Shown: positions 1-60,309 of the stretch, piece after piece
Position numbering within the stretch: the first letter of the stretch is position 1
How the letters are laid out: each line of letters opens with the position of its first letter
Assembly: GCF_902713615.1 (NCBI RefSeq)
Contig: NC_052162.1
Coordinates: 114,880,742 to 114,944,741 of the forward strand
Reading direction: 5' to 3'
DNA: 64,000 nucleotides
DNA from: Scyliorhinus canicula
Taxonomy: Eukaryota
The notes under the pieces: generated by a model
Seen by the model: the letters and a program-made list of their open reading frames with translations, nothing else
Databases searched by the model: none
Told to the model about the DNA's origin: nothing
Program-made: the position numbers and the translations under genes

Positions 1-255
1 CATCCCAACTCGGCTCACTCCCCCACCCTATCTCCATTACCCCTTAACCCCACATAACCTGCACATCTTTGGACGCTTAAGGACAATTTAGCATGGCTGG
101 TCCACCTAACCTACACATCTTTGGCCTGTGGGAGCACCCGGAGGAAACCCATGGGGTGAAAGTACAAACTCCACACTGACAGTGACCCAAGGCCGAAATT
201 GAACCCGGGTCCCTGACACTGTGAGGCAGCAGTGCTAACCACTATGCTGCCCCGT
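1..255 (-). mobile_element. tRNA-derived V-SINE (HE1-like)
   Basis: The reverse complement gives a tRNA-like head (GGGCAGCAT..GTGGTTAGCAC, GGTTCAATT B box) and the V-core GATGTG.AGGTTAGGTGGA; same family as ~20 other copies in the window. Confidence 0.8.
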
Positions 256-1325
256 CAAAGAGAGAAACTGGTGCAAGTAATTGGGGATCCAATTAAATTA
301 ATCCAGTGGCCAAATTGACCAATTGTCATGTTACAACAGGCCCAACTCTGACGTGAGGTAATTGTCACTTTGGGGATAAAAGTAGAGGTTCTGAAGGTCT
401 TCCTTGCTGGCCAAGTACTGAAGACTCCTGAGTCCGAATTCCAAAGAAATTACTGTCAAAGAAGGAGCCAAACTCCCGAGGCTGAATTCCACAAGAATTG
501 GCCTTAATTGTATCCCGATCTCGCCAATGGGAATAGGCCGGTTAGATCGGAAACCGATCGTCGCTTAGTGTCCAATTTTGGACTCTCCTGCGACCTAACT
601 GGCGCACTTGGATTCGCGCTTCGTACATCGTGGCCATTAGATCGTGCCCTGATTTTCATTTGCTGTAAGAAATGTAAAAGCTTAATTGCTGGGTCTGTAA
701 AGAATGTGCAATGAGGATAAATGTACTGGCAAGAGAGACCTTCAAGCTCTGATTAGCCTCAACATTTGAAACTGTATGAATAAGGGATTGTATAGAATCA
801 GATAAAGGGACAGTATGAAACAATTCTATTGTATTCCTGTCTAAGATAATGAGAGAAGGTGGTGTCAGCAATTGGGGATCCAAGTAAATTAATCTAGTGC
901 CAAATTGACCAATGGTCATGTTACAACAGACCCAACTCTGATGTGAGGTAATGGTCACTTTGGGGATAAAAGTAGAGGTTCTGAAGGTCTTCCTTGCTGG
1001 CCAAGTACTGAAGATTCCCAAGGCCGAGTTCCAAGGAAATTACTGTCAAAGAAGGAGCCAGACTCCCGAGGCTGAATTCCAGAAGAATTACTGTCAAAGA
1101 AGGAGCCAGAGAGGGTTACGCTACTACAGACTGATCACCCACATGAAGCTGGAAAAGTCAATGTTGGTTATTCAGTAAACCTATTTCATTTAATAAGCTT
1201 CTTTTTAAATTTACCATTCAGAGAATTCTGCCTTTGCCTTAATTGGTTAAAGTCTTGTCTGAACCAAAGTGAATTTATTAAATGGTAAGTTGGCGGTGGC
1301 TGAAGACAACTAAGTTCCAATTAAC
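256..1325 (+). repeat. LTR-like interspersed repeat, partial tandem duplication (256-500 repeated at ~860-1090)
   Basis: The same sequence recurs at ~19038-19630 (-) and ~61058-61495 (+). It has CCAAT and GATAAAA motifs, an internal ~39-bp tandem repeat (CTCCCGAGGCTGAATTCC..GAAGGAGCCA), and ends TTAACA. Confidence 0.55.
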
Positions 1326-1354
1326 AAGCTCAGAAAACATAAATCTTCAATTTA

Positions 1355-1960
1355 AAAACTTGCATTTCTATAGCACCTTTCACACCCACAGGACGTCCCA
1401 AAGTGCTTTACAGCCAATGAAGTACCTTTGAAGTTGTAATGTTGGAAACGCAGTTACGCCAATTTACACACAGCAAGATCCCACACACAGCAATGTGATA
1501 ATGAGCAGATGATATATTTTTAATGATGTTGATTGAGGGATAAATATTGACCAAGTAAATAGTGGCTGTGGGAACTTTTACACCCACCTGAGAGGGGCAG
1601 ACAGGGCCTCAGTTTAACATCTTATTTGAAAGAAGGCTGTTCTGACAGTGCAGCACTCCCTCAGTGCTGGGACCAGGAATGTTGGATGTGATTTAAATGA
1701 AATGAAAATCGCTTATTGTCATGAGTAGGCTTCAATGAAGTTACTGTGAAAAGCCCCTAGTCGCCACATTCCGGCGCCTGTCCGGGGAGGCTGTTACGGG
1801 AATCGAACCGTGCTGCTGGTCTGCTTGAAAAAGCCAGCGATTTAGCTGAGTGAGCTAAACCAGCCCCTATTTTTGTCCTCAAGTCCCTGGACTGGGATTT
1901 GATCCCACAACCTTCTGACTCCGAGGTGAGAGAGCTGCCCACTGAGCCACGGCTGACACT
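1355..1960 (-). mobile_element. DeuSINE (SacSINE1/AmnSINE-like) interrupted by a second tRNA-SINE at ~1696-1868
   Basis: Minus strand shows a tRNA-like head (GTGTCAGCCGTGGCTCAGTGG), a Deu-domain-like core (TTAAACTGAGGCCCTGTCTGCCCCTCTCAGGTGG) and a tail ending GCTATAGAAATGCAAGT. The nested SINE also occurs at ~47800-47985. Confidence 0.65.
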
Positions 1961-2234
1961 ATAAACAATACAAAGTTAGAAAGTGAAAGTTACCCTTTAA
2001 AACCCCCACCCTTTGCTTCCAGTGCCGAAATCTAATAATAAAACCCCAGTATAAATAACATGGATTTGACTGACAAATGTTGAGGTGTCGGTTTCGAGCC
2101 ACAAGTTTCGACTTCCCATTTGAACCTTGGGCACCTTTCTGTCTCTCTGTTACTCGTGTCAAAATTGAAGTGTTTACTTTGGCAAGAGGAATCGTGAAGC
2201 AATACCATATTTAAATTGAGAGAGATTAGAAGAC

Positions 2235-2690
2235 TTTTTAAAAAGTATTTTATTAAAGCATTTGTATATACATTAAACAGAACCAAAACCTCTGCCCCAC
2301 CCTCCCTGCCGTTCCCCTGTACCCATCCTGTCTTCCCCATCCCCCCCCCCCCCCAAAAGAAGTCGATAAACGGCTTCCATCTCCGGGCAAACCCACCCAC
2401 TGACCCTCTCAAGGGGTTGATTTTTTCCAGCCTAAGGAACTCTGCCGGGTAGCTGACACACACACCCTTCTTCGGCTGCCCCGTGTCCCTCAACTCCAAC
2501 AAAATCTGTCTCCAGGCTACCAGGGAGGCCAAGGCCAAGACGTCGGCCTCTCTCGCCCCCTGGGCTCCCGGGTCTTCCGAAGTCCAAATACCGCCACCTC
2601 CGGACCTGGGACACCTTCAGCACCTCAGACATTACGTCCATGAACCTCTGCCAGAACCCCCTTCAGCTTCGGACATGCCCAAAACATGAG
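2235..2690 (-). mobile_element. 5'-truncated L1 fragment (ORF2 C-terminus + 3' UTR)
   Basis: Translation LALASLVAWRQILL..LRGSVGGFARRWKPFIDFF matches the end of ORF2 at 13270-13463. Confidence 0.85.
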
Positions 2691-2699
2691 AGATTGCAA

Positions 2700-3650
2700 T
2701 ACTCCGTGTTACAGATAAATCTGCGCTGCAGGAATCACTAAACATTAGTGTGCTGCTACAGCAATTGATTAGGAAAGCAACTGGAATATTGGTGTTTCTC
2801 ACAAAGGGAATGGAATCTACAGAGGTGCAGGGCCTCTGTGAGACCCCATTGCAATATTGTGCACTATTCCTTCACCTTGTTTGAAAAACAAAGATAGAAT
2901 AGCAGTTCAGAGAAGGTTCACTTAATGCATTCTTGGGATGAGAGGCTTCTCATGAAGAAAGGTTGAACATGTTGCGTCTGTACCCACTGGAGTTTAGAGG
3001 TGATTTTATTGAAACATGTACAATCCTGTCTGTCTGTGTGAAGTCTGCCCGTTTTCCTCATGTCTGTGTCCGTTTCCTCCAGGTGCTCCGGTTTCCTCCC
3101 ACAGTCCAAAGATGTGCAGGTTAGGTGGATTAGCCTTGTAAATTTTCCCCTTCTTGTCCACAAAAAGGTGAGGTGGGGTTACTGGATTGTGGGGATAGAT
3201 TGGGGGAGTATTCCTAAGTAGGGTACTCTTTCAGAGGGTTGGAGCAGACTTGATGGGCCAAATTGACTCCTTCTCTGCTATAGGGGATTCTATCATCCTG
3301 AGGTTATTGATAGGTTAAAAATCAGGAGGATATTTCCAATTGTGGGAGAAATCAGAACCAGGGACACAAGTTATAAATGCGATCCACCATTAAGACAGAG
3401 ATTGAGGAGAACGTTTTTCTCTCAGATGGTGTTTAGCCTGTGGAATTCTGTAACCCAGAGAGCAGTGGTGGCTGGGTCATTGAATATATTCAGGGCAGTT
3501 AGACAGATTTTTGACAGATATTGGAGGGTTATGGGGGCCAGACAGGAAAGTGGAGTTGAGATCACAACCAGATCATCCATGACCTTAAAGAATGGGGCGA
3601 AGGCTCGAAGGGCTGAATGGCCTACTCCTGCTCCTCTATTCCTATCTGCA
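2700..3650 (+). mobile_element. CR1 LINE 3' fragment with nested V-SINE (~3025-3290)
   Basis: RRTFFSQMVFSLWNS motif and CR1 3' tail (GGGCTGAATGGCCTACTCCTGCTCCT). Confidence 0.75.
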
Positions 3651-3769
3651 AATTTCACCGGATGTTCAATTCAAACCTGTTTCAATTGACTAAACCCAGA
3701 ATTTATTCCAGCCCAGTTACAGGGGGCTCCAACATCTGCAGAATTAAACTCCAAGGGTCCAAATCAATA

Positions 3770-3995
3770 TAGGCGGCAAGGTTTTGCAGTGGTTAGCACT
3801 GCTGCCTCACGGCATTGATGACCCAGGTTAGATCCAGGCCCAGGGTCACTGTCCATGTGGAGATTGCACATTCTCCCCGTGTCTGTGTGGGTCTTACCCT
3901 CACAACCCAGAGATGTGCAGGGTAAGTGGATTGGCCATGCTAAATTGGCCCTTAATTGAAAAAAAAAATGGGTACTCAAAAATTATATTTTATAA
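3770..3995 (+). mobile_element. V-SINE, short A-rich-tailed form
   Basis: tRNA head + V core + AATGGGTACTC.AAATT tail; flanking direct repeat AAATCAATAT. Confidence 0.8.
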
Positions 3996-4069
3996 AAATC
4001 AATATGGTTCGGTCCTACTCCTGTCCTACATCAGAATCATTCTCTCTCAAACTATAAATCTCTGTTCCA

Positions 4070-4382
4070 GAATCTCTACAGTGCAGAAGGAGGCCATTCA
4101 GCCTACTGAGTCTGCACTGACCCTCTGAAAGAGCATTCACCCAAGCCCACACTCCCACCACATCCCAATAACCCCTTAACCTCACCTACACATCTTTGAA
4201 TACTAAACGGCAATTTAGCCTGGCCAATTCACCTAACCTGCAATCTTTGGACTGTGGGAGGAAACCGGAGCACCCGGAGGAAACCCACGCAGACACGGGG
4301 AGAAATGGAAACTCCACACAGAATTGAACCCGGGTCCCTGGCACTGAGGCAGCAGTGCTAACCACTGCCACTGTGCTGCCTC
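4070..4382 (-). mobile_element. V-SINE, long CR1-tailed form
   Basis: Minus-strand head/core and a CR1-like tail GGCTGAATGGCCTCCTTCTGCACTGTAG. Confidence 0.8.
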
Positions 4383-4399
4383 ACACACACCCTGCTGCC

Positions 4400-5039
4400 T
4401 ATTTATTTTAACACTAATTCATCCTGGTATACTGCTTATCCCCAGTGCTCCTCCCCTGAAGGTGCTGACCCTCTGGGCTTCAGTTTCTCTCTCACCTGTT
4501 GCTCTCCCCAGTGTCACCCAGGTGTCTAAATCTTTACACCTGAAGGTAACAAACTGTTCTGCTCAGGGGGACGTCACAATCTAATCCAGTGACCATCCAG
4601 ATGGACTTTGTGACGTCACCACCGCCCCCAATCCCAGGAGTTTGGAGACTTGGCTCCTGATGAGTAATGGGGTTCACGGCTCCCACAACTCCCCGCGACA
4701 GGTACAGAACTGCGCATGTCCACTGGAGAAGGGCAGCTGCTCACATGCGGAGCAAGGCGTTTCCTATTGGCCAAATAGCCGACGTTTCATGATGTCAAAA
4801 GTGACTTCTGTTGTCCAATGTGAGGCGCCAAATAGCCAATGGAAAGACTGGAGGAAAGAGAGGCGAGGTTGCGCATGTGCGAGGAAAAGCCCACCCCCTG
4901 ACCTTCCTTCTGAGGTGTTGACCAATGGAAAGAGTTAGAACCGGAAGGACTCTTGTCCTCCATCCAATCAGCGCGCGAGCTTTGTGCGAATGAAGATTGA
5001 GTTCACACAGACTGAAACTTCCTCCTGTCTCCAACATCT
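4400..5039 (+). promoter_or_regulatory. ZNF-1 CpG-rich promoter and non-coding exon 1
   Basis: CRE TGACGTCA at 4611; NRF1-like TGCGCATG at 4711 and 4870; CCAAT 4922 - CCGGAAG 4941 - CCAAT 4964; splice donor CT|GTGAGT at 5040. Paralogous modules precede every ZNF gene in the window. Confidence 0.7.
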
Positions 5040-6055
5040 GTGAGTAAAACACTTTCTTTTCTCCCCCTTTCCATTTCTTTTCTCATTCTCACCTTCAATT
5101 GGCCACTTGCAGCAACTGAAGGGAAAGGAAGTGAATCCAGGGAGGGTGCAGACTCTGCAAAGCTTAGCCCAGGTCTCTCTCTCTTAAAGATAAAGACATC
5201 CCTCAGCTTGACACATTTATTTGTCTGGTTAAAAGGATGGTCTCTTTCCCAGTGTTCACAATTAATGGGCTGGTTTCCCCAGGAGATGGCTGGCATGTAA
5301 GGGGACAATAAATGAATATTGGTCAGAGTTATATGTCTAGTTGTTATAAGGTGCAGATTACAAATATTATTTATGGTTCTGTAATAAAGTATATTGATAT
5401 TTCCAGTTGTGTAATAGTGTACTGTAGCTACATTATATATTTGCATTCATCTCTTTCCTCAGGGGGTTGTTGGTCTCTGGAATTCTCTTCCACAGGGACT
5501 AGAGGAGTCTGGGAATCATTGAATATATTCAAGAATGAGTTGGACAGATTTCTGATTGACCAGGGAGTTAAGGGTTATGGGGAACTGGCAGAAGGAGGGA
5601 TTTCTTTACTCGGGGATGTGGTGAAGCTTTGGAATTCTCTACCCTAAAGGACTGTGGAGCTTCAGTCATCCAAATATTTTAAAGGCTGAGATTGATAGGT
5701 TTCGAAATATTGAAGATATCAGGGGATATGGGGATAGTGTGGGAAAACGGTGCTGAGGTAAATCAGCCAGCGATCTCATGAAATGGTTGAGGAGGTTCGA
5801 TGGGCCTAATGGCCGACTGCAGCTCCTATTATGATTTCCCTATCCTGGAGAGGAAGCATGGATCTGTCAATCAGCCTGAATCAGCACTTTCAGCATTAGA
5901 TGCAGCAGAGTGAGAATGGAGGGATACTGTGTGGGATGGAGGTTTACAGTTTTTGGGAATGAGAGGGGGAAAAATGTTCCATAGAAACTAGAAATGTCTG
6001 TTCTGAATTTCTGTCCTGTACTGACAGCGATGACTTTCCCAAAATGTTTTTACAG
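5040..6055 (+). other. ZNF-1 intron 1 (GT..AG), conserved ends with CR1 fragments in the middle
   Basis: GTGAGT at 5040; TTTTTACAG acceptor ending 6055 preceded by a CTGAC branch-like motif; same ends in paralogs. Confidence 0.7.
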
Positions 6056-6410
6056 ACTAGTAGAAGAGGAGGAATTATAGACTGGAATCTCAAAACATCA
6101 TGTCTAAATCTGGCACAGTCTCTTGATTCTTTGGGACACGAATATCATCGGCCTGTGAATCCTGAAGAAATGTTTCACTGCTCTGTCGGCTTCAAAACAT
6201 TTTAAACATTCGTGCGACTTGAAAATCACCGAGACACACACACCAGAGTAGGAGTGTTCCAGAGCACTGACTGTGGAAAGAGCTTTAACCAGTTACACAG
6301 CCTGAAAAAACATCACCATTCACAGCGGGGAGAGACTGTACACATGTTCTGTGTGTGGATGAGGCTTCAACTGATTGTTTAACATGGAGAGATACAAAGA
6401 AACTCAAAAC

Positions 6411-7532
6411 ATGGAGAAACCGTGGAAATGTGGGGATTGTGGGAAGGGATACAGGGCCCCATCAGAGCTGGAAGCTCATCATCGCGTTCACACTGGGGAG
6501 AGGCCGTTCAGCTGCACTCAATGTGGGAAGGGATTCAGTGATTCATCCCACCTGTTGAGGCACCAGCGAGTTCACACGGGGGAGAAGCTGTTCACCTGCT
6601 CTAAGTGTGGGAAGGGATTCAATCATTCATCCACCCTGCAGACACATCAGCGAGTTCACACTGGGGAGAAGCCATTTACTTGCTCTAAGTGTGGAAAGGG
6701 ATTCAGACATTCATCCACCCTGCAGAAACATCAGCGAATTCACACCGGGGAAAGACCATTCACCTGCTCTCAGTGTGGGAAGGGATTCAATCGTTCATCC
6801 ACCCTGCAGACACATCAGCGAGTTCACACTGGGGAGAAGCCATTTACTTGCTCTAAGTGTGGAACGGGATTCAGACATTCATCCACCCTGCAGAAACATC
6901 AGCGAATTCACACCGGGGAAAGACCATTCACCTGCTCTCAGTGTGGGAAGGGATTCACTCAATTATCCAGCCTGCGAACACACCAGCGAGTTCACACTGG
7001 GCAGAGGCCATTCATCTGCTCTCAATGTGGGAAGGGATTCACTCAGTTATCCCATCTGCAGGCACATCTGCGAGTTCACACTGGGGAGAGGCCGTTTACT
7101 TGCTCTCAGTGTGGGAAGGGATTCACTCACTCATCACACCTTCGGGTACACCGGCGAGTTCACACTGGGGAGAGACCGTTCACCTGCTCTCAGTGTGGGA
7201 AGCGGTTCAGTGATTCATCCCATCTGTTGAGACACCAGCGAATTCACACTGGGGAGAGACCATTCTCCTGTCCTCAGTGTGGGAAGGGATTCAGTGATTC
7301 ATCCACCCTCCAGACACATCAGCGAGTTCACACTGGCGAGCGGCCATTTCTATGTTCAGTGTGTGGGAAAGGATTCACTCTGTCATCCATCCTGCTGACA
7401 CACCAGAGAGTTCACACTGGGGACAGGCCATTCATCTGCTCTGAATGTGGGAAGGGATTCATGCATGAACGGAACCTGCGGAAACACCATCAAGTTCACA
7501 TCTTGGAGAGACCATTCACCTGCTCTGAGTAG
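6411..7532 (+). CDS. C2H2 zinc-finger protein ZNF-1, 13 tandem fingers, no effector domain (alternative start ATG 6384)
   Basis: ORF 6375-7532; repeated CxxC..H..H with TGE(K/R)P linkers; start aacATGG at MEKPWKC; two further dead fingers lie after the TAG. Confidence 0.9.
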
Positions 7533-8052
7533 GGGGAGGGATTCACTGATCCATCCCACCTGCAAAGACACTGGCAACTTCACACTGGGTAGAGGCCATT
7601 CACCTGCTCTCCATATGGGAAGGGTTTCCCTGATTCATCGCGCCTGCTGAGACACCAACGTGTTCACAAGTTGGATTCTGCTGTTATTGTTTCTGCTCTC
7701 AATTACACCCAGGACTGCATTTTATTGATTCTGTCAATTGGTCAATGGGGAGACTTGGAGGGTTTCTTTCTGCTGGACTGGCCGGTCTCACAACTTTGCT
7801 TCCAGTGGGCTGATGCTCTTTGTCTTGTTGAGAATACCTGGTTTCAAATTTCACAAAGATCACAGAGTGAAGGGGTGTTTGGAAGTAGAAGATATTTCAT
7901 TTCGACTTCCGGTTGCGGCTATGACCAGCTAAGTCGCACGTTTGGCTGCTCCTGCTACAAAGGTGTTTTCGGGCCGATTGGAGGGCCCCAACGGCGCTGT
8001 AAGGACAAATCCCGGTGGGGGAAGGCTCCCTGAAGAGAACCAGACCAACTTT

Positions 8053-8898: not shown

Positions 8899-9668
8899 AC
8901 CCAGGGGATACTTGGCGGCCGTAGCCGCTCGGGTACTTTCAGCTGAATTCTTTGTTTGGATTTTGAACTCTTGCTGTGGTTTTTCTTCTGATGTTTTTTC
9001 CCCCTTTGCCAACTTCCCTTAGTTATTGTTATTGTGGTTATTCATGGTTATTTATGGTTATTTATGCTGTTTGGTAGAGGGCGACTGTTAAGTACATTGT
9101 TATTTGTTATTTATCTGTTATTTATAATGTTAAGTTGGGGAGGTGGGACGGGGGGGGAGAGCAGATCGGGGATATGGGCCCCTAGGGGGGGTTCTTTTAC
9201 AGGCATGGACGGGGACGGGGGTGGAACTGAAGATGGCGGGGTGGGGTGTGGCAGGGCAAAAGCGCGGGCTTTCCTCTGTTTTCCCGCGCGCGGGGCAGAG
9301 GAGGGGGGAGGGGAGGAGTGCGGGGCGTGGCTAGCAATGGCGACCTTTCCCGCGCTGGAGCGGGGCCAGGGAGGAGTGGCAAGGGGGGGGAGGCCCCCCC
9401 CCCCACGCCGGGGGGAGTCGGAGTGTGGCAGGAGCAGCCGGGTCAGCGTGAACCAGCTGACTTACGGGAGTACGATGGAGGGTACATCGCGGCTAGGAGG
9501 GGTCCTAGCCTGGGGGGGGGGGGAGGGGGGTTAGGGAGGGACACCGGGTTGCTGCTGAAAAGACCAGAAACGGGAAGTGGAGGACTGGAGAGGTGGGGGG
9601 AGGGGGACATCGCCATGGGGAGCGGGTCAGAAGGGGAGGGTCGACCCGGGGCGAGCAGGGAACAGGAC

Positions 9669-12600
9669 ATGGCTAATCGGCAGGGGAAGGGGGCGGGTCG
9701 TCCCGCGACCCGGCTGATCACTTGGAACGTGAGGGGGTTGAATGGGCCGGTCAAGAGATCAAGGGTATTCTCACACCTGAAGGGACTGAAGGCTGATGTA
9801 GCAATGTTACAGGAGACCCATTTGAAGATAGTGGACCAGGTTCGCCTGAGAAGGGGGTGGGTGGGACAGGTGTTCCACTCTGGATTGGACGCAAAGAACC
9901 GGGGGGTGGCGATTCTGGTGGGAAAGAGGGTGTCGTTCGTGGCGGAGGAGGTGGTGGCGGATAAGGAGGGTAGGTATGTGATGGTGAAGGGTAAGCTGCA
10001 GGGGGAGAAAGTGGTGATGGTCAACGTATATGCCCCGAACTGGGATGACGCGGGTTTTATGAGGCGCCTATTGGGCCTCATTCCGGGACTGGAGGCAGGG
10101 GGCTTGATCATGGGGGGGGACTTTAACACAGTGCTGGACCCCGGGCTAGACAGATCGAGCTCAAGGACCAATAGGAGGCCGGCAGCGGCAGAAGTGCTGA
10201 GGGGGTACATGGAGCAGATGGGAGGAGTAGACCCATGGAGGTTTGGTAGGCCGAGGGCGAGGGAGTATTCCTTTTTCTCCCACGTCCATAGAGTGTACTC
10301 CAGAATCGATTTCTTCGTGTTGAGCAGGGGGCTGATCCCGAGGGTACGGGAAGCTGAGTACTCGGCCATTGCGATCTCTGATCATGCACCGCATTGGGTG
10401 GATGTGGAAATGGGGGAGGCGCGGGACCAGCGCCCGCTGTGGCGGCTGGATGTGGGGCTGTTAGCGGACGACGAGGTGTGTAAAAGGGTCCGGAAGAGTA
10501 TTGAGAGCTATCTGGACTTGAATGACACGGGTGAGGTGCAGGTGGGGATGGTCTGGGAGGCCCTGAAGGCAGTGATCAGGGGAGAGCTGATCTCCATAAG
10601 GGCGCACAGAGAAAGAAAGGAGAGGCAGGAGAGGGAGAGGCTGGTGGGGGAGCTATTGGAAGTGGATAGGAGATATGCGGAGGCACCAGAGGAGGGGCTG
10701 CTGGGAGAACGGCGCAGCCTGCAGGTCAAGTTCGACCTGCTGACCACCAGGAAGGCAGAGACGCAGTGGAGAAGGGCACAGGGCGCGGTCTATGAGTATG
10801 GGGAAAAGGCGAGCAGGATGCTGGCACACCAGCTTCGCAAACGAGATGCGGCTAGGGAGATTGGGGGAGTGAAGGAGAGGGGCGGGAAGGTAGTGCAGAA
10901 GGGGCAAGAAGTGAACGGGGTCTTCAGGGATTTTTACAAGGAGTTGTATCGGTCTGAGCTGCCGACGAGGAGAGGGGGAATGGAGGACTTCCTAAACAAA
11001 TTGAGGTTCCCAAGGGTCCAGGAGGGGCTGGTAGAAGGGCTGGGGGCGCCAATAGGGCTAGAGGAGCTAGTCAAGGGAATAGGTCAGATGCAAGCGGGGA
11101 AGGCGCCGGGGCCAGATGGGTTCCCGGTGGAATTCTATAAGAAAAATGTGGACTTGGTGGGACCGGTACTGGTACGAGCCTTTAATGAGGCGCGAGAGGG
11201 GGGGGTTCTGCCCCCGACAATGTCGCAGGCTCTGATCTCCCTGATATTGAAGCGGGATAAAGACCCCGTGCAGTGCGGGTCCTACAGGCCTATCTCGCTT
11301 CTGAACGTGGATGCCAAGTTGCTGGCAAAGATCCTGGCAGCTAGAATAGAGGATTGTGTGCCAGGGGTAATCCATGAGGACCAGACGGGGTTCGTGAAGG
11401 GGCGGCAGCTCAACACGAACGTGCGGAGATTGCTGAATGTAATTATGATGCCGGCAGTGGAGGGGGAGGCTGAGATAGTGGTAGCGCTGGACGCGGAGAA
11501 GGCATTCGATAGGGTGGAGTGGGAGTACCTGTGGGAGACGTTGGAACGGTTTGGGTTTGGGGAAGGGTTTATTAAGTGGGTGAAGTTGCTCTACTCGGCC
11601 CCGACGGCGAGTGTAGTGACAAACGGGAGGAGGTCGGAGTATTTCGGGCTCCACCGAGGGACCAGGCAGGGATGTCCCCTATCCCCCCTACTTTTCGCAC
11701 TGGCGATTGAACCGTTGGCGATGGCACTGAGGGGTTCAGGGGGGTGGAGAGGACTGACTAGGGGAGGGGAGGAACATCGAGTATCGCTGTATGCGGATGA
11801 TCTACTGCTGTACGTGGCAGACCCAGAAGGGGGAATGCCGGAGATAATGGAACTATTAGCAGAGTTTGGGGACTTTTCGGGGTACAAACTAAATTTGGGC
11901 AAAAGCGAGGTTTTTGTGATACACCCGGGGGACCAGGGAGAGGGTATTGGGAGACTCCCCTTCAAGCGAGCAGGAAAGAGCTTTAGGTACTTAGGGGTGC
12001 AGGTGGCAAGGAACTGGGGGACCCTGCACAAGTTGAACTTTTCCAGGCTGGTGGAACAGATGGAGGAGGAATTTAAGAGGTGGGACATGGTACCGTTGTC
12101 GCTGGCGGGGAGGGTGCAGTCAATCAAAATGACGGTCCTCCCAAGGTTCTTGTTTTTATTTCAGTGCTTGCCCATCTTCCTCCCTAGGGCCTTCTTCAAA
12201 AAGGTGACGAGTAGCATCATGAGCTACGTGTGGGCGCATGGCACCCCAAGGGTGAGGAGGGTCTTTTTGGAGCGGAGTAGGGACAGTGGAGGGCTGGCAC
12301 TGCCCAATCTCTCGGGGTACTACTGGGCGGCAAATGTGTCAATGGTGCGCAAGTGGATGATGGAAGGGGAGGGGGCAGCTTGGAAACGAATGGAGAGGGC
12401 GTCCTGTGGCAACACAAGCCTGGGGGCCCTAGTAACGGCACCATGGCCGCTCCCCCCCACGAGGTACACCACGAGCCCGGTGGTGGCGGCCACCCTCAAG
12501 ATATGGGGGCAGTGGAGGCGACATAGGGGGGAAATGGGAGGTCTGTTGGCGGCGCCAATAAGAGGGAACCATAGATTCATCCCGGGGAACATCGACGGGG

Positions 12601-13463
12601 GATTTCAGAGCTGGTACAGGGTGGGCATACGGCAGCTGAAGGACCTGTTTATAGAGGGGAGGTTTGCGAGCCTGGGAGGGCTGGAGGAGAAGTTTGAGCT
12701 CCCCCCGGGAAACATGTTCAGATATTTACAAGTGAAGGCATTTGCTAGGCGGCAGGTGGAGGGGTTTCCCCTGCTCCCCAGTAAGGGGGCGAGTGATAGG
12801 GTGCTCTCGGGGGTCTGGGTCGGAGGGGGGAAGATATCAGACATCTACAAGATAATGCAGGAGGCGGAAGCAGCATCAGGGGAGGAGCTGAAAGCCAAGT
12901 GGGAAGGGGAGCTGGGAGAGCAGATAGAAGACGGGACGTGGGCGGATGCACTGGAGAAGGTCAACTCTTCCTCCTCGTGTGCGAGACTGAGCCTCATTCA
13001 ATTTAAGGTGCTGCATAGAGCTCACATGACGGGGACAAGGATGAGCCGGTTCTTTGGGGGTGAGGACAGATGTGTCAGATGTCTGGGAAGCCCAGCGAAC
13101 CATGTGCATATGTTCTGGGCATGTCCAGTGCTGGAAGGGTTCTGGAAGGGGGTGGCAAGGACGGTGTCGAAGGTGGTGGGGTCCAGGGTCAAACCAGGAT
13201 GGGGGCTTGCGATCTTTGGGGTCGGGGTAGAACCGGGAGTACAGGAGGCTAGGGAGGCCGGAATACTGGCCTTTGCGTCCCTAGTGGCTCGACGAAGGAT
13301 ATTAATTCAATGGAAGGACGCGAGGCCTCCAAGCGTTGAAACTTGGATTAACGATATGGCTAGCTATATTCAGCTAGAAAGGATCAAATTTGCCCTGAGA
13401 GGGTCGGTACAGGGATTCGCCAGGCGGTGGCAACCTTTCCTTGACTTTTTAGATCAGAGATAG
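9669..13463 (+). CDS. L1 ORF2p (APE endonuclease, reverse transcriptase, C-terminal Cys-rich domain)
   Basis: TWNVRGLN, LQETH, GGDFN, SRIDFF, SDHAP (EN); QGCPLSP, YADD (RT); CVRC..HMFWAC; no stops over ~1264 codons from ATG 9669. Confidence 0.95.
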   Translation: MANRQGKGAGRPATRLITWNVRGLNGPVKRSRVFSHLKGLKADVAMLQETHLKIVDQVRLRRGWVGQVFHSGLDAKNRGVAILVGKRVSFVAEEVVADKEGRYVMVKGKLQGEKVVMVNVYAPNWDDAGFMRRLLGLIPGLEAGGLIMGGDFNTVLDPGLDRSSSRTNRRPAAAEVLRGYMEQMGGVDPWRFGRPRAREYSFFSHVHRVYSRIDFFVLSRGLIPRVREAEYSAIAISDHAPHWVDVEMGEARDQRPLWRLDVGLLADDEVCKRVRKSIESYLDLNDTGEVQVGMVWEALKAVIRGELISIRAHRERKERQERERLVGELLEVDRRYAEAPEEGLLGERRSLQVKFDLLTTRKAETQWRRAQGAVYEYGEKASRMLAHQLRKRDAAREIGGVKERGGKVVQKGQEVNGVFRDFYKELYRSELPTRRGGMEDFLNKLRFPRVQEGLVEGLGAPIGLEELVKGIGQMQAGKAPGPDGFPVEFYKKNVDLVGPVLVRAFNEAREGGVLPPTMSQALISLILKRDKDPVQCGSYRPISLLNVDAKLLAKILAARIEDCVPGVIHEDQTGFVKGRQLNTNVRRLLNVIMMPAVEGEAEIVVALDAEKAFDRVEWEYLWETLERFGFGEGFIKWVKLLYSAPTASVVTNGRRSEYFGLHRGTRQGCPLSPLLFALAIEPLAMALRGSGGWRGLTRGGEEHRVSLYADDLLLYVADPEGGMPEIMELLAEFGDFSGYKLNLGKSEVFVIHPGDQGEGIGRLPFKRAGKSFRYLGVQVARNWGTLHKLNFSRLVEQMEEEFKRWDMVPLSLAGRVQSIKMTVLPRFLFLFQCLPIFLPRAFFKKVTSSIMSYVWAHGTPRVRRVFLERSRDSGGLALPNLSGYYWAANVSMVRKWMMEGEGAAWKRMERASCGNTSLGALVTAPWPLPPTRYTTSPVVAATLKIWGQWRRHRGEMGGLLAAPIRGNHRFIPGNIDGGFQSWYRVGIRQLKDLFIEGRFASLGGLEEKFELPPGNMFRYLQVKAFARRQVEGFPLLPSKGASDRVLSGVWVGGGKISDIYKIMQEAEAASGEELKAKWEGELGEQIEDGTWADALEKVNSSSSCARLSLIQFKVLHRAHMTGTRMSRFFGGEDRCVRCLGSPANHVHMFWACPVLEGFWKGVARTVSKVVGSRVKPGWGLAIFGVGVEPGVQEAREAGILAFASLVARRRILIQWKDARPPSVETWINDMASYIQLERIKFALRGSVQGFARRWQPFLDFLDQR

Positions 13464-13489: not shown

Positions 13490-14090
13490 CCGGGGGGGAG
13501 GGGGGGGGGAGGGGGGGGGAGGGAGGAGGGGGAGGGGGGGGGAAGGAGGGGGGGGGAGGGAGGGAGGAGGGGGGAGGGGGGGGAAGGAGGGGGGGGGAGG
13601 GGGGGGGAGGGGGGGGGGGAGAGGGGGGGGGGAGGGAGGGGGGGGGGAGGGGGGGGGGGAGGGAGGGGGGGGGGAGGGAGGGGAGGGAGGGGGGGGGGGG
13701 GGGAGGGGGGGGAGGGGGGGGGGGAGGGAGGGGGGGGAGGGGGGGGAGGGAGGGGGGGGAGGGGGGGGGGGAGGGAGGGGGGGGAGGGGGGGGGGAGGGA
13801 GGGGGGGGGAGGGGGGGAGGGAGGGGGGGGGGAGGGGGGGGAGGGAGGGGGGGNNNNNNNNNNNNNNNNNNNNNNNNNNNNNNNNNNNNNNNNNNNNNNN
13901 NNNNNNNNNNNNNNNNNNNNNNNNNNNNNNNNNNNNNNNNNNNNNNNNNNNNNNNNNNNNNNNNNNNNNNNNNNNNNNNNNNNNNNNNNNNNNNNNNNNN
14001 NNNNNNNNNNNNNNNNNNNNNNNNNNNNNNNNNNNNNNNNNNNNNNNNNNNNNNNNNNNNNNNNNNNNNNNNNNNNNNNNNNNNGGGGGG
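13490..14090 (+). repeat. G/A polypurine tract in the L1 3' UTR running into an N gap (13854-14083)
   Basis: Only G and A for ~360 bp; true length is unknown because of the gap. Confidence 0.85.
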
Positions 14091-25319: not shown

Positions 25320-26372
25320 TCACTCAATGCCTCCGCTAATCGGAGCAGGTGAATGGCCTCTCCCCGTGTGAACTCGCTGATGTCTCTGCAGGCTGGATGA
25401 ATGTCGGAATCCTTTCCCACAATGAGAGCAGGTGACTGGCTTCTGCCCAGTGTGAATTCGCTGGTGACTCTTCAAGTGGGATAACTGAGTGAATCCCTTC
25501 TCACACTGAGAGCAGATGAACGGCTTCTCCCCAGTGTGAAATCGCTCATGTCTCCACAGGGTGGATGAATGTCTGAATCCCTTCCCACACTGAGAACAGA
25601 TGAACGGCCTCTCCCCTGTGTGAACGCGCTGGTGTATCTTCAGGCTGGATAACTGAGCGAATCCCTTCCCACACTGAGAGCAGGTGAACGGCCTCTCCCC
25701 AGTGTGAATTCGCTGGTGTGTCCGCAGGGTGGATAAATCTCTGAATTCCTTCCCACACTGAGAGCAGGTGAACGGTCTCTCCCCAGTGTGAACTCGCTGG
25801 TGTGCCTGCAGGTGGGGTGCCTGAGTAAATCCTTTCCCACACTGAGAGCAGGTGAATGGCTTCTCCCCAGTGTGAATTCGCTGATGTGACTTCAGGCTAA
25901 ATAACGCAGTGAATTCCTTCCCACACTGAGAGCAGGTGAATGGCTTCTCCCCGGTGTGAACCCGCTGGTGTGTCTTCAGGTTGGATACCTGAGTGAATCC
26001 CTTCCCACACTGAGAGCAGGTGAATGGCTTTTTCCCAGTGTGAACTCGTTGGTGTGACTTCAGGCTAGATAACACAGTGAATCCCTTCTCACACTGAGAG
26101 CAGGTGAACGGTCTCTCCCCAGTATGAATTCGCTGATGTGACTTCAGGGTGGATGAATGTCTGAATCCCTTCTTACACTGAGAGCAGGTAAACGGCTTCT
26201 CCACAGTGTGAACTCTTTCATGTGACTTCAGGCCGGATAATTCAGTGAATCCCTTCCCACACACAGTGCAGGTAAATGGCCTCTCCCCAGTGTGACTGCG
26301 TCGATGAATCTCCAGCTTAGATCGGACTCTGAATCTCTTCCCACAGACTTCACATTTCCACGGTTTCTCCAT
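25320..26372 (-). CDS. C2H2 zinc-finger protein ZNF-2, 12 fingers; a frameshift near 25365 removes two terminal fingers
   Basis: ORF 25320-26408, start aacATGG at 26372 ([10 protein letters not shown]); remnant fingers continue out of frame to HQQVHN* at 25196. Confidence 0.88.
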
Positions 26373-26736
26373 GTTTTGTGTCTCCGTGTATCTCTCCAGA
26401 TCAGACAATCAGTCGAAGCCTCGTCCACACACAGAACATGTGTACGGTCTCTCCCCGCTGTGAATGGTGTGATTTTTTTTTCAGGCTGTGTAACTGGTTA
26501 AAGCTCTTTCCACAGTCAGTGCTCTGGAACACTCTCACTCGGGTGTGTCTGTCTCGGTGCTTTTTCAGCCACACTGATGTTTAAAATCGTCTGAAGCGAA
26601 CGGAACAGACAAACATTTCTCCTCCCTTCTCGATTCAAAGGCCGATGATATTCAGGCCCCGATGAACCGAGCGACTCTGGCAGATCGAGATGTGACTTTT
26701 GAGATTTCTGTCTGTAATTCCTCCTCTTCTAATATC

Positions 26737-32105: not shown

Positions 32106-32791
32106 CATCGATAGGCCAATGATCCCACAGAATAGACAAGCAGGCTCGATGGGCCAAATGGCCGACTGAGGCTCCTATCTGTTATGATCTCTGTGCCTAG
32201 GACAGGAAGCAGTGAGAATGGATCTGTCAATCAGCCTGAATCAGCACCCTCAGGAGAATTGGGAGGGTGAATATTAGATACAGCAGAGTGAGAATGGAGG
32301 GAGAGTGTGTGGGATGGAGATTTACAGCTTTTGGGGAGTGAGAGAGGAAAAAATGTTCCAGAGAAACTAGAATTGTCTGTTCTGAATTTCTGACCTGGAC
32401 TGATAGTGATGTCTTTTGTAAATTGTTTTTGCAGGATATTAGAAGAAGAGGAATTAGAGACAGAAATCTCGAACGTCGCGTCTCAATCTGACTGAGTCTC
32501 TCAATTCCTTTGAACTGAATATCATCAGCCTTTGAATCTAGAAGGAGAAATGTTTGTCTTTTCTGTCGGCTTCAAAAGATTTTAAACATCAGTGTGACTG
32601 GAAAAGCACCGAGACACACACACCCGAGTGAGAGTGTTCCAGAGCACTGACTGTGGAAAGAGCTTTAACCAGTTACATAGCCTGAAAAAAATCACACCAT
32701 TCACAGCGGGGAGAGACCGTACACGTGTTCTGTGTGTGGACGAGGCTTCAACTGATCGACAAACCTGGAGTGACACGACGACACCCGGATC

Positions 32792-33487
32792 CTGGAGAAA
32801 CCGTGGAAATGTGGGGACTGTGGGAAAGGATTCAGGGCTCCATCTCAGCTGGAAGCTCATCGGCGCAGTCACACCGGGGAGAGGCCGTTCATCTGCTCTC
32901 AGTGTGAGAAGGGATTCACTACTTCATCGAGCCTGTGGACACACCAGCAAGTTCACATTGGGGAGAGGCTGGTCACTTGCTCTCAGTGTGAGAAGGGATT
33001 CACTACTTTAAAGAGCCTGCAGAAACATCAAAGACTTCACGCTGGGGAGAGGCCATTCACCTGCTCTCAGTGTGAGAAGGGATTCACGACTGCATCAAAC
33101 CTGCAGATACATCAGCGAGTTCACACTGGGGAAAGGCCGTTCACCTGCTCTCAGTGTGAGAAGGGATTCACTACTTCATCGAACCTTCGGAAACACCAGC
33201 GAATTCACACTGGGGAGAGGCCATTCATCTGCGCTCAGTGTGAGAAGGGATTCACTACTTTATCGAACCTGCAGATACACCAGCGAGTTCACACTGGGGA
33301 GAAGCCATTCACCTGTTCTCAGTGTGGGAAGGGATTCACTCAGTTATCCAACCTGCAGAGACACCAGCGAGTTCACAGGGAAGACGGCGTTAACCTGTTC
33401 TTGGTGAGAGAAGGGATTCAGATATCCATACACCCTGCAGGAACACTAGCGAGTTCACACCTGGAAGAAGCCATTCACCTGCTCTGA
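32792..33487 (+). pseudogene. ZNF-3: open frame of 7 intact C2H2 fingers starting at CTG instead of ATG (start-loss pseudogene or CUG-initiated gene)
   Basis: Manual translation (L)[39 protein letters not shown], 231 codons with no ATG; intron 29847-32434; decayed fingers after the frameshift at ~33378. Confidence 0.8.
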
Positions 33488-42690: not shown

Positions 42691-43565
42691 ACGGATTGTG
42701 AGAAAATTGGTGGTGGTAAATAGTGAGGAGGATAGTCTTTGGTTACAGGAGGATAATAATAATCTTTATTATTGACAAAAGTAACTCTGCAACGTCCATC
42801 TAATTCAATTAGAAATTATTGATCATTTCTGCTTGAGGACCTTCATAGGCAGAAAGTTCCAGATCATAATCAATCACTACCTCCTGTATCTTAACCAACT
42901 GAAACAATCCTATACATTAAACACAATTTTAGTCCTGTTACATATTTCTGTTAGGCTGGCAGCCTGCATGAAGATGTCCTGGGCTCTCTGGCCAGGACAG
43001 TAAGCATCGAGCATGGATCTGTCAATCAGCCTGAATCAGCACCTTCAGGAGAATTGGGAGGGTGAATATTAGATACAGCAGAGTGAGAATGGAGGGAGAG
43101 TGTGTGGGATGGAGATTTACAGCTTTTGGGAAATGAGAGAGGACCATAAAAACCAGAATGGTTTGTTCTGAAATTTTTTCCTGTACTGACAGTGATGTCT
43201 TTTGTAAACTCCTTTTAAGGATATCAGAAGAGGAAGAATTACAGACAGACATCTCAAACCAAACCTCTCATCTCGATCTGATAGATTCACTCAATTCACT
43301 GAGACTTGAAAATCATCGGCCTTTGAATTGAGAACGTGAAAGGTTTGTCTGTTGTGCCTGCTTCAGATGGTTTTAACCATCAGTGTGACGGGAAAATCAC
43401 CGAGACACACACATCTGAGTGAGAGTGTTCCAGAGCACTGACTGGGAAGAGCTTTCACCAGTTACACAAACTGAAAATAAACAGCAGGGAGACACCGTAC
43501 ACGAGTTCTGTTTTTGAGCCTTCAACTGATTGTCCAACCTGGAGAGACACAAGGACACCAGCACC

Positions 43566-44576
43566 ATGGAGAAACCATGGAAATGCCAGGACTGTGGGAT
43601 GGGATTTAGATTCCCATCTGTACTGGAAACTCATCGACGCATTCACACTGGAGAAAGGCCATTCACCTGCTCTCAGTGTGGGAAGGGATTCACTAAGTTA
43701 TCCGGCTTGCACAGGCACCAGCCAGTCCACGTTAGGGAGAAGCCATTCACCTGCTCCACATGTGGGAAGGGATTTAGTACTTCATCCGAACTGTATACAC
43801 ACCAACAAATTCACACTGGGGAGAAACCATTCACCCACAGTGAGTGTGGGAAGGGATTTACTCAGGTATCCAATAAGCTGGGCCACACTGTCACTCACAG
43901 CAATGAGAGACCCTTTAAGTGCTCTGACTGTGGGAGCAGCTTCAAACTGTCTCTCAAACTGATGAACCATCAGTGCATTCACACTAGGGAGAGACCGTTC
44001 AGCTGCTCTCACTGTACGAAGAGGTTTCAACACTCGTCCCATCTGCTGACACACCAGCTCCTGCACACCGGAGAGAGGCTGTTCACCTGCTCTCAGTGTG
44101 GAAAGGAATTCACTCTCATAAGCAACCTGCGGAGACACGAGCGAATTCACACTGGGGAGAGGCCATTTACCTGCTCTGATTGTGGGAAAGGATTCACTCG
44201 GATATCCCACCTACAGACACACCAGCGAATTCACAGTGGAGAGAGGCCATTCACCTGCTCTGACTGTGGGACAGGATTCACTCGGTTATCCCACCTGCAG
44301 GCACACCAGCGAGTTCACACTGGGGAGAGGCCATTCACCTGCTCTGAATGTGGGAAGGGATTCACTCAGCTACCCAATCTGCAGGCACACCAGCGAGTTC
44401 ACACTGGGGAGAGGCCATTCACCTGCTCTGAGTGTGGGAAGGGGTTCCCTCTCTTAGCCACGTTGCAGGCACACCAGCGTCTTCACACTGGGGAGAGGCC
44501 ATTCACGTGCACCGTGTGTGGGAAGGGATTCATTCGGCCAACACTTCTGCTGAGACACCAGCAAGTTCACGAGTGA
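43566..44576 (+). CDS. C2H2 zinc-finger protein ZNF-4, 12 finger units (finger 4 has C->H)
   Basis: ORF 43530-44576; accATGG start at MEKPWKCQDC; acceptor AG at 43218-43219. Confidence 0.88.
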   Translation: MEKPWKCQDCGMGFRFPSVLETHRRIHTGERPFTCSQCGKGFTKLSGLHRHQPVHVREKPFTCSTCGKGFSTSSELYTHQQIHTGEKPFTHSECGKGFTQVSNKLGHTVTHSNERPFKCSDCGSSFKLSLKLMNHQCIHTRERPFSCSHCTKRFQHSSHLLTHQLLHTGERLFTCSQCGKEFTLISNLRRHERIHTGERPFTCSDCGKGFTRISHLQTHQRIHSGERPFTCSDCGTGFTRLSHLQAHQRVHTGERPFTCSECGKGFTQLPNLQAHQRVHTGERPFTCSECGKGFPLLATLQAHQRLHTGERPFTCTVCGKGFIRPTLLLRHQQVHE

Positions 44577-50831: not shown

Positions 50832-51758
50832 TCACTTGTGAACTTGTTGATGTCTCAGCAGGTGCGATGAAACACAAAATCCCTTCCCACATTGAGAGCA
50901 GATGAAAGGCCTCTCCCCAGAGTGAACTCGTTGGTGGCTCCGTAGGTGGGCTGGATGACTGAATCCCTTCCCACACTGAGAGCAGGAGAATGGCTTCTCC
51001 CCAGTGTGAACTCGCTGGTGTTTCTGCAGGGTGGATAACAGAGTGAATCCTTTCCCACAGTCTGAGCAGGTGAGTGGCCTCTCCACAGTGTGAAAACGCT
51101 GGTGTGCCAGCAGGCCAGATAATTGAGTATATCCCTTCCCACAATCAGAGCATGTGAATGGCCTCTCCCCAGTGTGAACCCGCTGGTGTGTCTGCAGGGT
51201 GGATAACCGAGAGAATCCCTTGCCACAGTCAGAGCAGGTGAATGGCCTCTCACCAGTGTGAACTTGCTGGTGTCTCTGAAGGGTAGATAACTGAGAGAAT
51301 CCCTTCCCACAGTCAGAGCAGGTGAACGGCCTCTCCCCAGTGTGAACTCTCTGGTGAGAGGTCAGTTCTCGAGAGCTTTTGAAGCCACTCCCACAGTCAG
51401 AGCAATTAAAGGGTCTCTCATTGGTGTGAGTGACACTGTGTCTCCGCAGGTTAGATAAGTGAGAAAATCCCTTTCCACACTGAGAGCAGGTGAACGGCCT
51501 CTCCCCTGTGTGAATTCGTTGGTGGGATATTAGTTCTTGAGAGCTTTTGAAGCCACTCCCACAGTCAGAGCATTTAAAGGGTCTCTCATTGGTGTGAGTG
51601 AAATTGTGTCTCTGCAGGTGAAATAACTGAGTGAATCCCTTCCCACACACGGAGCAGGTGAACGGCCTCTCCCCGGTGTGACTGTGTCGATGGGTTTCAA
51701 GCACAGATGGGAACCTAAATCCCTTCCCACAGTCCCCACATTTCCACCGTTTCTCCAT
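50832..51758 (-). CDS. C2H2 zinc-finger protein ZNF-5, 11 fingers
   Basis: ORF 50832-51794; aacATGG at 51758 ([10 protein letters not shown]); acceptor 51922, donor 54381. Confidence 0.9.
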
Positions 51759-52457
51759 GTTGCTGGTGTCCTTGTGTCTCTCCAAGTCGGACAATCAGTT
51801 AAAGTCTCACACAGGATACGGGAACTTTCTCTCTCCGCTGTGAACGGTGTGATGTTTTTTCAGGCTGTGTAACTGGTTAAAGCTCTTTCCACAGTCAGTT
51901 CACGGGAACACTTCTAATATGCTGTAAATTGAGTTCACAGAAATCATCATGTCAGTATAGGATAGAAATTCAGAACAGACAATTGTAGTTTCTCTGGAAC
52001 ATTTTTTCCCCTCTCATTCCCCAAAGCTGTAAATCTCCATCCCACACACTCTCCCTCCATTCTCACTCTGCTGTATCTAAGATTCACCCTCCCAATTCTC
52101 CTGAAGGTGCTGATTCAGGCTGATTGACAGATCCCTGTTCACTGCTTCCTGTCCTGGACACAGAGACTGAAAATCTCCATGCAGCTGCCAGACAGATATA
52201 TGTCTATGTTACTGGACTAAACATGTTTTAATGTTTCCGATTGTTCCAGTTAGTTAAGATACAGGGGGTTGTGACTGATCATGTTCTTGAACTTGCTGCC
52301 TATGAGGGGAGTCAAGCAGAGATGATTAATAATTTCTAAATGAAATTGGATGGGTACTGCAGGGTTACAGAATGGGACCCACTCAAGACTGACAATTGCT
52401 CAAGGAGTTGGCCTCAATGCAAAATGTCCAATGGTCTCCTTCTCTTCTGTTATAAAT

Positions 52458-58080: not shown

Positions 58081-59718
58081 CTCAAATAAATCTCCCAATC
58101 GTTCCTCCTCCAAGAAAAATAATCCAACCTTCTCGAGTTTGTCCACGAAACAGAAGTTCCTCATTCCTTTTCTATATTTTGGATCATGTTCTGCCATCAC
58201 ATTGTGGAAATGAAACCTCACTTGTGATAAAATCCAGAGGGCCGGATCCTGAGGAGGTTCATACTGAGCATTAAGAGACCTGGCTCAGGTCACTGCGTTC
58301 AACAAATGGCTGAGGAGGAACAAGTTCTCAATAGTTAATGAGCAGCTAAAGGTGGATAGACGGGTGGGGTCATTACTTCTGCCTGTTTACAGTAGGGCTG
58401 TAAACCTATAAAGATAGCGCAGTGTGAGAGACAAACAGTGATCTACACTGTTGGGCCTTAACCCAGCCTCAGTTGGGTATCAGAGAAGGCAACTAAAAAC
58501 AGCTGCTCCCTTCTCTATTGCCCACACACATAATTTACAATAATCACTGACCTCTCACCCCATGCTCATCCCTGCATCTGAGAGAGGTGATTGGATCTTA
58601 GACCCGAGAGACTTGATAGCAAACCAAACATGTTCTCTCACTGATTTGCAATGTTTATTGCCTGAAATTAACAATTAAGATAAAATACATGTATTATTAT
58701 TTACAGTTGTGTAATATTGTGCTGTAGCTACGTTATATATTTCCAGTCATCTTTTCCCTCAGAGGGTTGTTAGTCTCTGCATTTCTCTTCCACAGGGACC
58801 AGTGGGGTGTGGGGGTAACTGAATATATTCACCGCTGAGTTGGACAGATTTCTGATTGACCAGGGAGTCGAGGGTTATGGGGAACCAGCAGGAAAATGGA
58901 GAGAAAGCTGAGATGAGGAGGGATTTCCTCACTCAAGAATATGGAGCATTCTCTCCCTCAGAGGATTGTGGAGTCATCACGTATTTTCAGGGCAAAGATC
59001 AATGGGTTTCTAGATGATGAAGATAGCAAAGAATATGGAGGATAGTGTGGGAAAATGGTGCTGAGGTAGATCGGCCAATTATCTCAAACGGATGAGCAGG
59101 CTCAATGGGCCGAATGGCTGGACAGAAAGCAGTGAGCATGGATCTGTCAATCAGCCTGAATCTGCACCTTCAGGAGAATTGGGAGGGTGAATATTAGATA
59201 CAGCAGAGTGAGAATGGAGGGAGAGTGTGTGGGATGGAGATTTACACCTTTTGGGGAATGAGAGAGGAAAGAATGTTCCAGAGAAATTAAAATAATCTGT
59301 TCTGAATTTCTATCCTGGACTGACAGTGATGACATTTGTAAATTCCTTTTACAGGATATTAGAAGAGGAGGAATTATAGACAGAAATCTCAACCCAAACG
59401 TTACATCAAAGTCTGATAGTCACTCAACTCCACGGGTCTGGAATATTACCAGCCTTTGATACTTGGAGGAGAAATGTTTCTCTGGTCTGTCTGCTTCAGA
59501 GGTTTTAAACATCAGTGTGACTGGAAAATCACCGAGACACAGACACCCGAGTGAGAGTGTTCCAGAGCACCGACTGTGAAAAGAGCTTTAACCAGTTACA
59601 CAGCCTGAATAAATACCATCACACCATTCACATCAGGGACAGACTGTACACGTGTTCTGTGTGTGGGCGAGGCTTCAATTGATTGTCCAACCTGGAGAGA
59701 CATAAGGAGACCCAAAAC

Positions 59719-60309
59719 ATGGAGAGACCGTGGAAATGTGAGGACTGTGGGAAGGGATTCAGATTCCCATCAGAGCTGGCGATTCATCGACGCATTCACA
59801 CTGGGGAGAGACCATTCACCTGCTCTCAGTGTGGGAAGGGATTCACTGAGTTATCCAACCTGCGGAAACACCACCGAGTTCATACTGGCGAGAAACCATT
59901 TACCTGCTCTCAGTGTGAGAAGGGATTCACTCAGTTATCCAACCTGCAGACACACCAGCGAGTTCACACTGGGGAGAAACCATTTACCTGCTCTCAGTGT
60001 GGGAAAGGATTCAGTAATTTATCCCACTTGCAGATACACTGGCGAGTTCACACTGGGGAGAAGCCATTCACCTGCTGTCAGTGTGGGAAGGGATTCAGTG
60101 AATCATCCAGCCTGAGGGTGCACCAACGTGCTCACACAGGAGAGAAGCCATTCACCTGCTCTTTGTGTGGGAAGGCATTCAGTAGATCATCCAACCTGCG
60201 GATACACGAGAGAGTTCACACCGGGGACAGACCATACACCTGCTCCCACTGTACGATGGCATTCGGTGATCCATCCGCCCTGCGGAGACACCAACAAGTT
60301 CACAAGTGA
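59719..60309 (+). CDS. C2H2 zinc-finger protein ZNF-6, 7 fingers
   Basis: ORF 59683-60309; aacATGG at 59719 (MERPWKCEDC); intron 54933-59354. Confidence 0.9.
   Translation: MERPWKCEDCGKGFRFPSELAIHRRIHTGERPFTCSQCGKGFTELSNLRKHHRVHTGEKPFTCSQCEKGFTQLSNLQTHQRVHTGEKPFTCSQCGKGFSNLSHLQIHWRVHTGEKPFTCCQCGKGFSESSSLRVHQRAHTGEKPFTCSLCGKAFSRSSNLRIHERVHTGDRPYTCSHCTMAFGDPSALRRHQQVHK

Follow-up and report, generated by a model that had tools for sequence, protein, structure and literature searches.

Fossil zinc fingers upstream of a putative linker-methionine start in a C2H2 gene family of Scyliorhinus canicula, and a shared TGA that looks inherited

Six paralogous C2H2 zinc-finger reading frames, of 196-373 codons and with 7-13 regular fingers, were found in a 64,000-nt stretch of Scyliorhinus canicula DNA, referred to hereafter as the window. 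Upstream of every one of these frames lies an in-frame TGA, set at the same distance from the conserved start position (Table 1). The first-pass annotation had read the sequence around this TGA as the remains of further fingers, and had raised the question of whether the stop is retained as a guard that seals the present start or has just been inherited. We have therefore asked what the upstream sequence is, where the present frame begins, and whether the TGA behaves as a selected feature.

The six frames are Krueppel-type C2H2 poly-zinc-finger genes, with tandem C-x2-C-x12-H-x3-H fingers and TGEKP-like linkers. The copy 1 frame matched the Pfam families zf-C2H2 (E=1.4e-81, 13 stretches) and zf-H2C2_2 (E=4e-98), and KRAB (PF01352) was absent from its 25 best Pfam matches. 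The fingers begin at residue 1 of the frames, and the dead N-terminal part described below matches a shark-specific linker, not KRAB. An exact look-up of the six ATG-to-stop proteins in the protein collection gave 0 matches. Whole-protein homolog searches and searches of a representative library, which were dominated by generic multi-finger proteins, returned no near-identical protein of the species' own genome.

The copies differ in their state of preservation. The copy 6 frame (59719-60309), which ends after 196 codons, is roughly half as long as those of copies 1, 2, 4 and 5. Copy 3 (32753-33487) has CTG at the family start, an extra in-frame TGA in the spacer and no more than 7 fingers, and is thus a pseudogene unless it relies on a non-AUG or downstream start. 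Similarity among the copies stops 500-1000 nt 5' of the start. The DNA 5' of copy 1 (1-5600) consists of short interspersed repeats in a mosaic, each of which recurs in the window, with 5-15 occurrences at 70-90% identity, and 3' of copy 1 there is an open frame of 1405 codons (9246-13463), followed by a 231-base run of N (13854-14084).

Table 1. Positions of the zinc-finger reading frames, their leaders and the upstream features in the window.
Feature	Position	Strand	Description
Upstream block	5863-5960	+	85-97% mean pairwise identity, six copies; 0.36 parsimony steps per site
Candidate 3' splice site	6019-6055	+	TACTGAC, branch-point-like (6019-6025); pyrimidine-rich tract; AG (6054-6055)
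Copy 1 leader	6056-6410	+	355 nt; dead linker (ILEEEEL...EYHRP.N) and three dead C2H2 fingers
Upstream reading frame	6170-6205	+	11 codons (MFHCSVGFKTF, then TAA); start of dead finger -3
Leader block	6203-6305	+	tail of dead finger -3 and dead finger -2; finger -2 part spared by copy 5 deletion
Dead finger -1	6315-6374	+	TGA of copy 1 only, 6360-6362; TGA of all six copies, 6372-6374
Spacer, TGA to start	6375-6410	+	36 nt; least conserved part of leader
Copy 1 reading frame	6411-7532	+	start 6411; 373 codons, 13 C2H2 fingers; N-terminus MEKPWKC at former linker
Copy 2 leader	26373-26736	-	364 nt; TGA 26409-26411
Copy 2 reading frame	25320-26372	-	start 26372; 350 codons, 12 fingers
Copy 3 leader	32435-32791	+	357 nt; TGA 32753-32755 and second in-frame TGA
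Copy 3 frame	32792-33487	+	start position 32792, CTG in place of ATG; 7 fingers
Copy 4 leader	43220-43565	+	346 nt; TGA 43527-43529
Copy 4 reading frame	43566-44576	+	start 43566; 336 codons, 11 fingers
Copy 5 leader	51759-51921	-	163 nt; TGA 51795-51797
Copy 5 reading frame	50832-51758	-	start 51758; 308 codons, 11 fingers
Copy 6 leader	59355-59718	+	364 nt; TGA 59680-59682
Copy 6 reading frame	59719-60309	+	start 59719; 196 codons, 7 fingers

Translation of the leader in shifting frames gave, in order, a linker, finger -3, finger -2, finger -1 and then the MEKPWKC frame, which bears out the earlier description of the upstream stretch as up to three dead fingers. When the six copies were aligned, the lesions proved to be common to them: a TAA in finger -3, the frame breaks, and the TGA in finger -1. 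Stop-free pieces of the leader matched zf-H2C2_2 at E=1e-4, short of the Pfam cut-off. The A-run at 6296-6305 differs in length among the copies, in line with the variable upstream A-runs noted previously. The leader is 346-364 nt long in five copies as compared with 163 nt in copy 5, where a deletion had been put at ~185 bp; our alignment placed it at ~190-200 nt, with loss of the linker and dead finger -3. What copy 5 retains is a candidate splice acceptor, 11 nt of the exon start and the finger -2 block. The short upstream frame MFHCSVGFKTF is intact in three of the six copies (1, 2 and 3). The translated pieces and their common lesions support the view that the leader is decayed coding sequence of the gene family itself.

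The substitution pattern within the leader was less clear-cut. Values of pN/pS were 0.46-0.74 in the leader and 0.39-0.56 in the coding part, a comparison of few sites that does not separate the two. The proportions of differing sites (pN, pS) in the leader were 0.07-0.21, against a pS of 0.35 in finger 1. Parts of the leader also change more slowly than finger 1 does at synonymous positions, so that strict neutrality does not hold for the leader, a point to which we return below.

If the leader is a decayed N-terminal part, its counterpart might still be translated elsewhere. The search for relatives was limited to the atypical first finger; it led to elasmobranch proteins, and their homology to the six loci was confirmed by tblastn. 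Residues 6-75 of a basking-shark protein (Cetorhinus P0146) aligned across the TGA, over the interval from -96/-108 to +113, with an identity of 63-66% (E 1e-33 to 1e-37), and a sawshark protein (Pristiophorus P0251) matched the copy 2 leader at 67% (E 2e-12). Another Cetorhinus model, P0356, reads YRMLEDEVLQ..., similar to the exon start YRILEEEEL. In a horn-shark protein (Heterodontus P0142) the linker lies, with its Met codon, inside an open frame, so that the linker Met is present also in a relative that reads through the linker. The window copies resemble P0251, P0146, P0356, P0142 and Heterodontus P0225 in having homologous linker, finger -1 and atypical first finger, and differ from them in being broken by stops and frameshifts where those proteins keep the linker, finger -1 or both in frame. 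These matches support the existence of live counterparts of the dead linker and finger -1 in the proteins of other sharks. They also lend weight to the proposal that the founder of the family lost its N-terminus and re-initiated inside the finger array, since the counterparts of the dead linker and finger are still translated in other sharks.

The position of the present start fits this history. In all six copies the start context has A at -3 and G at +4. The first-pass annotation had placed the start ATG, in strong Kozak context, at a TGEKP linker position; the context and the linker Met stand, with the exception that copy 3 has CTG. The alignment with intact relatives supports a former finger linker as the place where the present frame begins, at a Met codon. 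Copy 1 carries an additional in-frame ATG at 6384-6386, 3' of the TGA and 27 nt 5' of the family start, which would add MERYKETQN; with A at -3 and G at +4, its context is as good as that of 6411. The start actually used would be ATG 6411, or 6384 in copy 1.

We then consider the TGA itself. It lies exactly 36 nt from the start in six of the six copies, so that its presence and distance are as first described; only the positions previously assigned to the end of the triplet need correction, being those of its first base. Selection to keep the TGA as a guard against N-terminal extension into the dead fingers would account for both the invariance and the constant distance. The degree of conservation, however, is that of the leader as a whole. 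Among leader columns without gaps, 64% were invariant across the six copies, and 34 of the 128 three-nucleotide windows in 6245-6410 (27%) were fully invariant, so that the invariance of one such window is expected by chance (p ~0.27). Invariant runs of 8-10 bases occur elsewhere in that stretch, against 4 bases for the run that contains the TGA. A maximum-likelihood tree of the six copies had a star-like shape, and its branches summed to 0.73 substitutions per site. Non-CpG sites near the TGA had undergone 0.38-0.68 parsimony steps each, for which the probability that three sites remain unchanged is ~0.25. The TGA is thus no more conserved among the six copies than the bases that flank it, contrary to what a seal on the start would lead one to expect.

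A guard also needs something to stop. Between the TGA and the in-frame stop that precedes it, none of the six copies has an AUG in frame, and additional in-frame stops were found 5' of the TGA in every copy. With no upstream in-frame AUG frame for it to terminate, the TGA guards nothing. Neither property of a selected upstream stop or uORF element was seen: conservation did not rise above background, and no AUG-initiated frame was terminated. Two further observations weigh against a guard, namely the in-frame AUG that copy 1 has gained 3' of the TGA, and the spacer that follows directly, which evolves faster than any other part of the leader (0.83 steps per site, with 47% of columns invariant). 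We therefore regard selective retention of the TGA as a guard as highly improbable. The data favour the other explanation offered at the outset, that the TGA was just inherited; it looks like an inherited scar, one of several lesions.

How such a stop may have arisen is suggested by the relatives. At the position of the TGA, shark relatives carry Gln or Arg, the Arg having been read by eye from the horn-shark protein P0307 (GFSRLSGL). Conversion of a CGA Arg codon to TGA by CpG deamination is plausible. This origin had been proposed from a nearby site said to be CGA in copy 1 and TGA in other copies; the idea is reasonable, but the example was reversed, as the site is TGA in copy 1 (6360-6362) and CGA in copies 2, 3 and 6, and is deleted in copies 4 and 5.

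Both the truncated architecture and the decay appear to reach beyond the window. Annotated proteins that begin with MEKPWKC are found in Mustelus asterias (P0125, with a single-exon CDS range of 1257 nt), Chiloscyllium (P0155 and P0335) and Pristiophorus (P0124). As compared by protein models alone, these share the predicted N-terminus of copies 1, 2, 4, 5 and 6. Since models with this start occur in three other shark orders, the architecture looks old. The models Heterodontus P0391 and Pristiophorus P0254 and P0266 contain an out-of-frame translation of the same dead finger (..RGETIHVSCVWTRLQLIIQPGETQG), with the peptide ..SHHSQRGETIHVSCVWTRLQLIIQPGETQG.. in both genera, and the decay is therefore not confined to the cluster in the window. 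The ..TRLQLII.. peptides of the Heterodontus and Pristiophorus models are compatible, at the protein level, with CAACTGATT, and other shark species may carry the same TGA. Among sharks, therefore, both the truncation and the decay of finger -1 appear to be old and widespread. With decay of that age and spread, one lesion that is invariant among six recent copies is unremarkable.

The same comparison exposed irregular gene models. Giant models of the white shark and the horn shark carry ..TMEKPWKC.. internally. Among P0391, P0254, P0266, P0360 and P0370, either the dead finger is read out of frame or TMEKPWKC occurs internally, up to three times in shark proteins of 1500-2000 residues, as if adjacent genes had been fused. 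Public models that read the dead finger or repeat TMEKPWKC are likely to be annotation artefacts in shark zinc-finger clusters.

Whether the leader is part of the mRNA bears on what the dead fingers are today. The candidate 3' splice site (Table 1) is kept in all six copies, including copy 5 in spite of its deletion, and lies ~355 nt 5' of the start (the copy 5 leader being 163 nt). We also considered an acceptor nearer to the ATG but rejected it, as 6375-6410 has no conserved AG with a pyrimidine tract. In the basking-shark model P0356, the start ATG appears, at the protein level, to overlap acceptor-like sequence, and the acceptor may therefore not always be used. An indirect sign of transcription came from contig sets guessed to be RNA. 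Of 18 matching contig sets, from seven studies, 15 contained a fraction of 0.39-0.76 of the sampled 31-letter words of the leader, as compared with only 0.15-0.41 for the whole of 5400-7700. It is plausible that the leader is transcribed and forms a 5' UTR. It would then begin at 6056, joined by splicing to a short upstream exon that ends at the donor-like site at 5910, or else belong to an unspliced and longer first exon that starts near 5900.

The leader could instead lie outside any 5' UTR, as part of silent relics or as intron or promoter DNA of genes whose mRNA starts or is spliced close to the ATG. No run on record as RNA contained the stretch, the reading frames are without a public protein match, and copies 3 and 6 look damaged (a CTG start, and 7 fingers only), all of which would suit such a reading. 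Four copies, however, have open frames of 308-373 codons in which 11-13 fingers are intact; a conserved acceptor is absent near the ATG, where the spacer is the least conserved part; and small contig sets from several studies contain more of the leader words than expected. On balance we think it unlikely that the leader is not 5' UTR, and a leader that would be transcribed is retained here as the plausible reading.

Slow evolution was seen in two blocks (Table 1). Within the leader, the block at 6203-6305 showed 0.18-0.29 steps per non-CpG site, as against 0.38-0.68 nearby, and at these sites it evolved two to three times more slowly than the remaining leader. Its finger -2 part was the slowest, at 0.18 steps per non-CpG site and a mean pairwise identity of 0.91-0.94. 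The end of the copy 5 deletion falls exactly at the start of this part. The second block, at 5863-5960, is better conserved than any other part of the locus (mean pairwise identity up to 97%). It lies 100-190 nt 5' of the candidate acceptor, has no CpG in any copy, and contains ATTGG (reverse CCAAT) in copies 3-6 and a donor-like GTGAGA site at 5910. Copy 1 has an 18-nt deletion in this block, and copy 2 diverges 5' of it. The block is possibly a candidate promoter or a short first exon. A coding upstream exon was rejected here, because the sole ATG-led frame is 19 codons long and stops short of the candidate donor.

These rates could mean that the leader, or the blocks at 6203-6305 and 5863-5960, act as a selected cis-element, whether as promoter, promoter-proximal sequence or translational control. 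The TGA would then merely adjoin the element, which is compatible with its being inherited. The low rate and high identity of the finger -2 block relative to its surroundings are consistent with such an element, as is the extent of the copy 5 deletion, which leaves exactly this block and the acceptor. Between the window and a Heterodontus model, moreover, the out-of-frame peptide of the dead finger is ~70% identical, close to the 72% of the live first finger; against this, the cross-species comparison consists of protein models only, chosen by similarity. The block was also picked post hoc from only six, star-like copies, the slow blocks are CpG-poor, and poverty in CpG alone lowers the substitution rate; gene conversion among the paralogs could have a similar effect. 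The conserved block had no Rfam match at E up to 1, its consensus fold showed no covariation (the term was positive, with a double change in one of 25 pairs), and it did not come out as a structured RNA element of the Rfam families.

Selection on the leader or blocks as a cis-element is, in our judgement, possible but considerably less probable than its absence, and a regulatory role of the slow blocks can be put forward only tentatively. More speculative again is the stronger form of the proposal, in which one or both of the blocks were recruited, as nucleotide sequence, to control a large subfamily of shark zinc-finger genes and have stayed near-constant since the loss of coding; we consider this doubtful. 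If it were true, a control element would be shared across paralogs, and possibly across shark orders, and would act either in transcription, as a promoter-proximal or cluster-wide binding site, or in translation. The slow blocks, in and before the leader, are the only part that might repay further work; they could be a shared regulatory element of the family.

Fossil fingers outside a reading frame have precedents. Degenerate fingers within arrays, and stop-severed fingers carried in a 3' UTR, have been described before, and in the human gene ZNF252 the 3' UTR contains eleven finger motifs, complete and degenerate (PMC2865497). The shark leader resembles the fossil fingers of ZNF252 and other KRAB-C2H2 genes in that finger DNA has been severed from the frame by a stop and would be kept, untranslated, in the same exon, and in its clustered, tandemly duplicated setting. 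Unlike ZNF252, the shark genes have their dead fingers on the 5' side, show no KRAB or other effector domain in their frames, and have a set of lesions common to the whole subfamily. With the dead fingers on the 5' side, a new start inside the array was needed. By analogy, dead fingers on the 5' side together with initiation at a linker Met may be seen as the counterpart of the known 3' UTR case.

We conclude that the leader is probably a run of dead fingers that decayed before the duplication, with the start at a linker Met and a TGA that has no guarding role. The origin of the leader is the well-supported part of this model: it is the decayed N-terminal coding sequence of the family, made up of the linker (ILEEEEL...DL.) and three fingers. 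Its stops and frameshifts would predate the duplication that gave the six copies, and the TGA, 36 nt from the start, would be one of several inherited lesions with no part in protecting that start. The surviving array would be translated from a Met in the G position of the former TGEKP linker (..T-M-E-K-P-W-K-C..). A stop selected as a guard would have been out of the ordinary, and the data do not support one. For annotation, the locus carries a warning, as several public shark models read the dead fingers in whichever frame is open or fuse neighbouring genes. For the biology of the family, the model would mean that tandem zinc-finger genes can lose their N-terminal part and survive by starting at a pre-existing linker Met, with the dead coding sequence staying behind as a leader.
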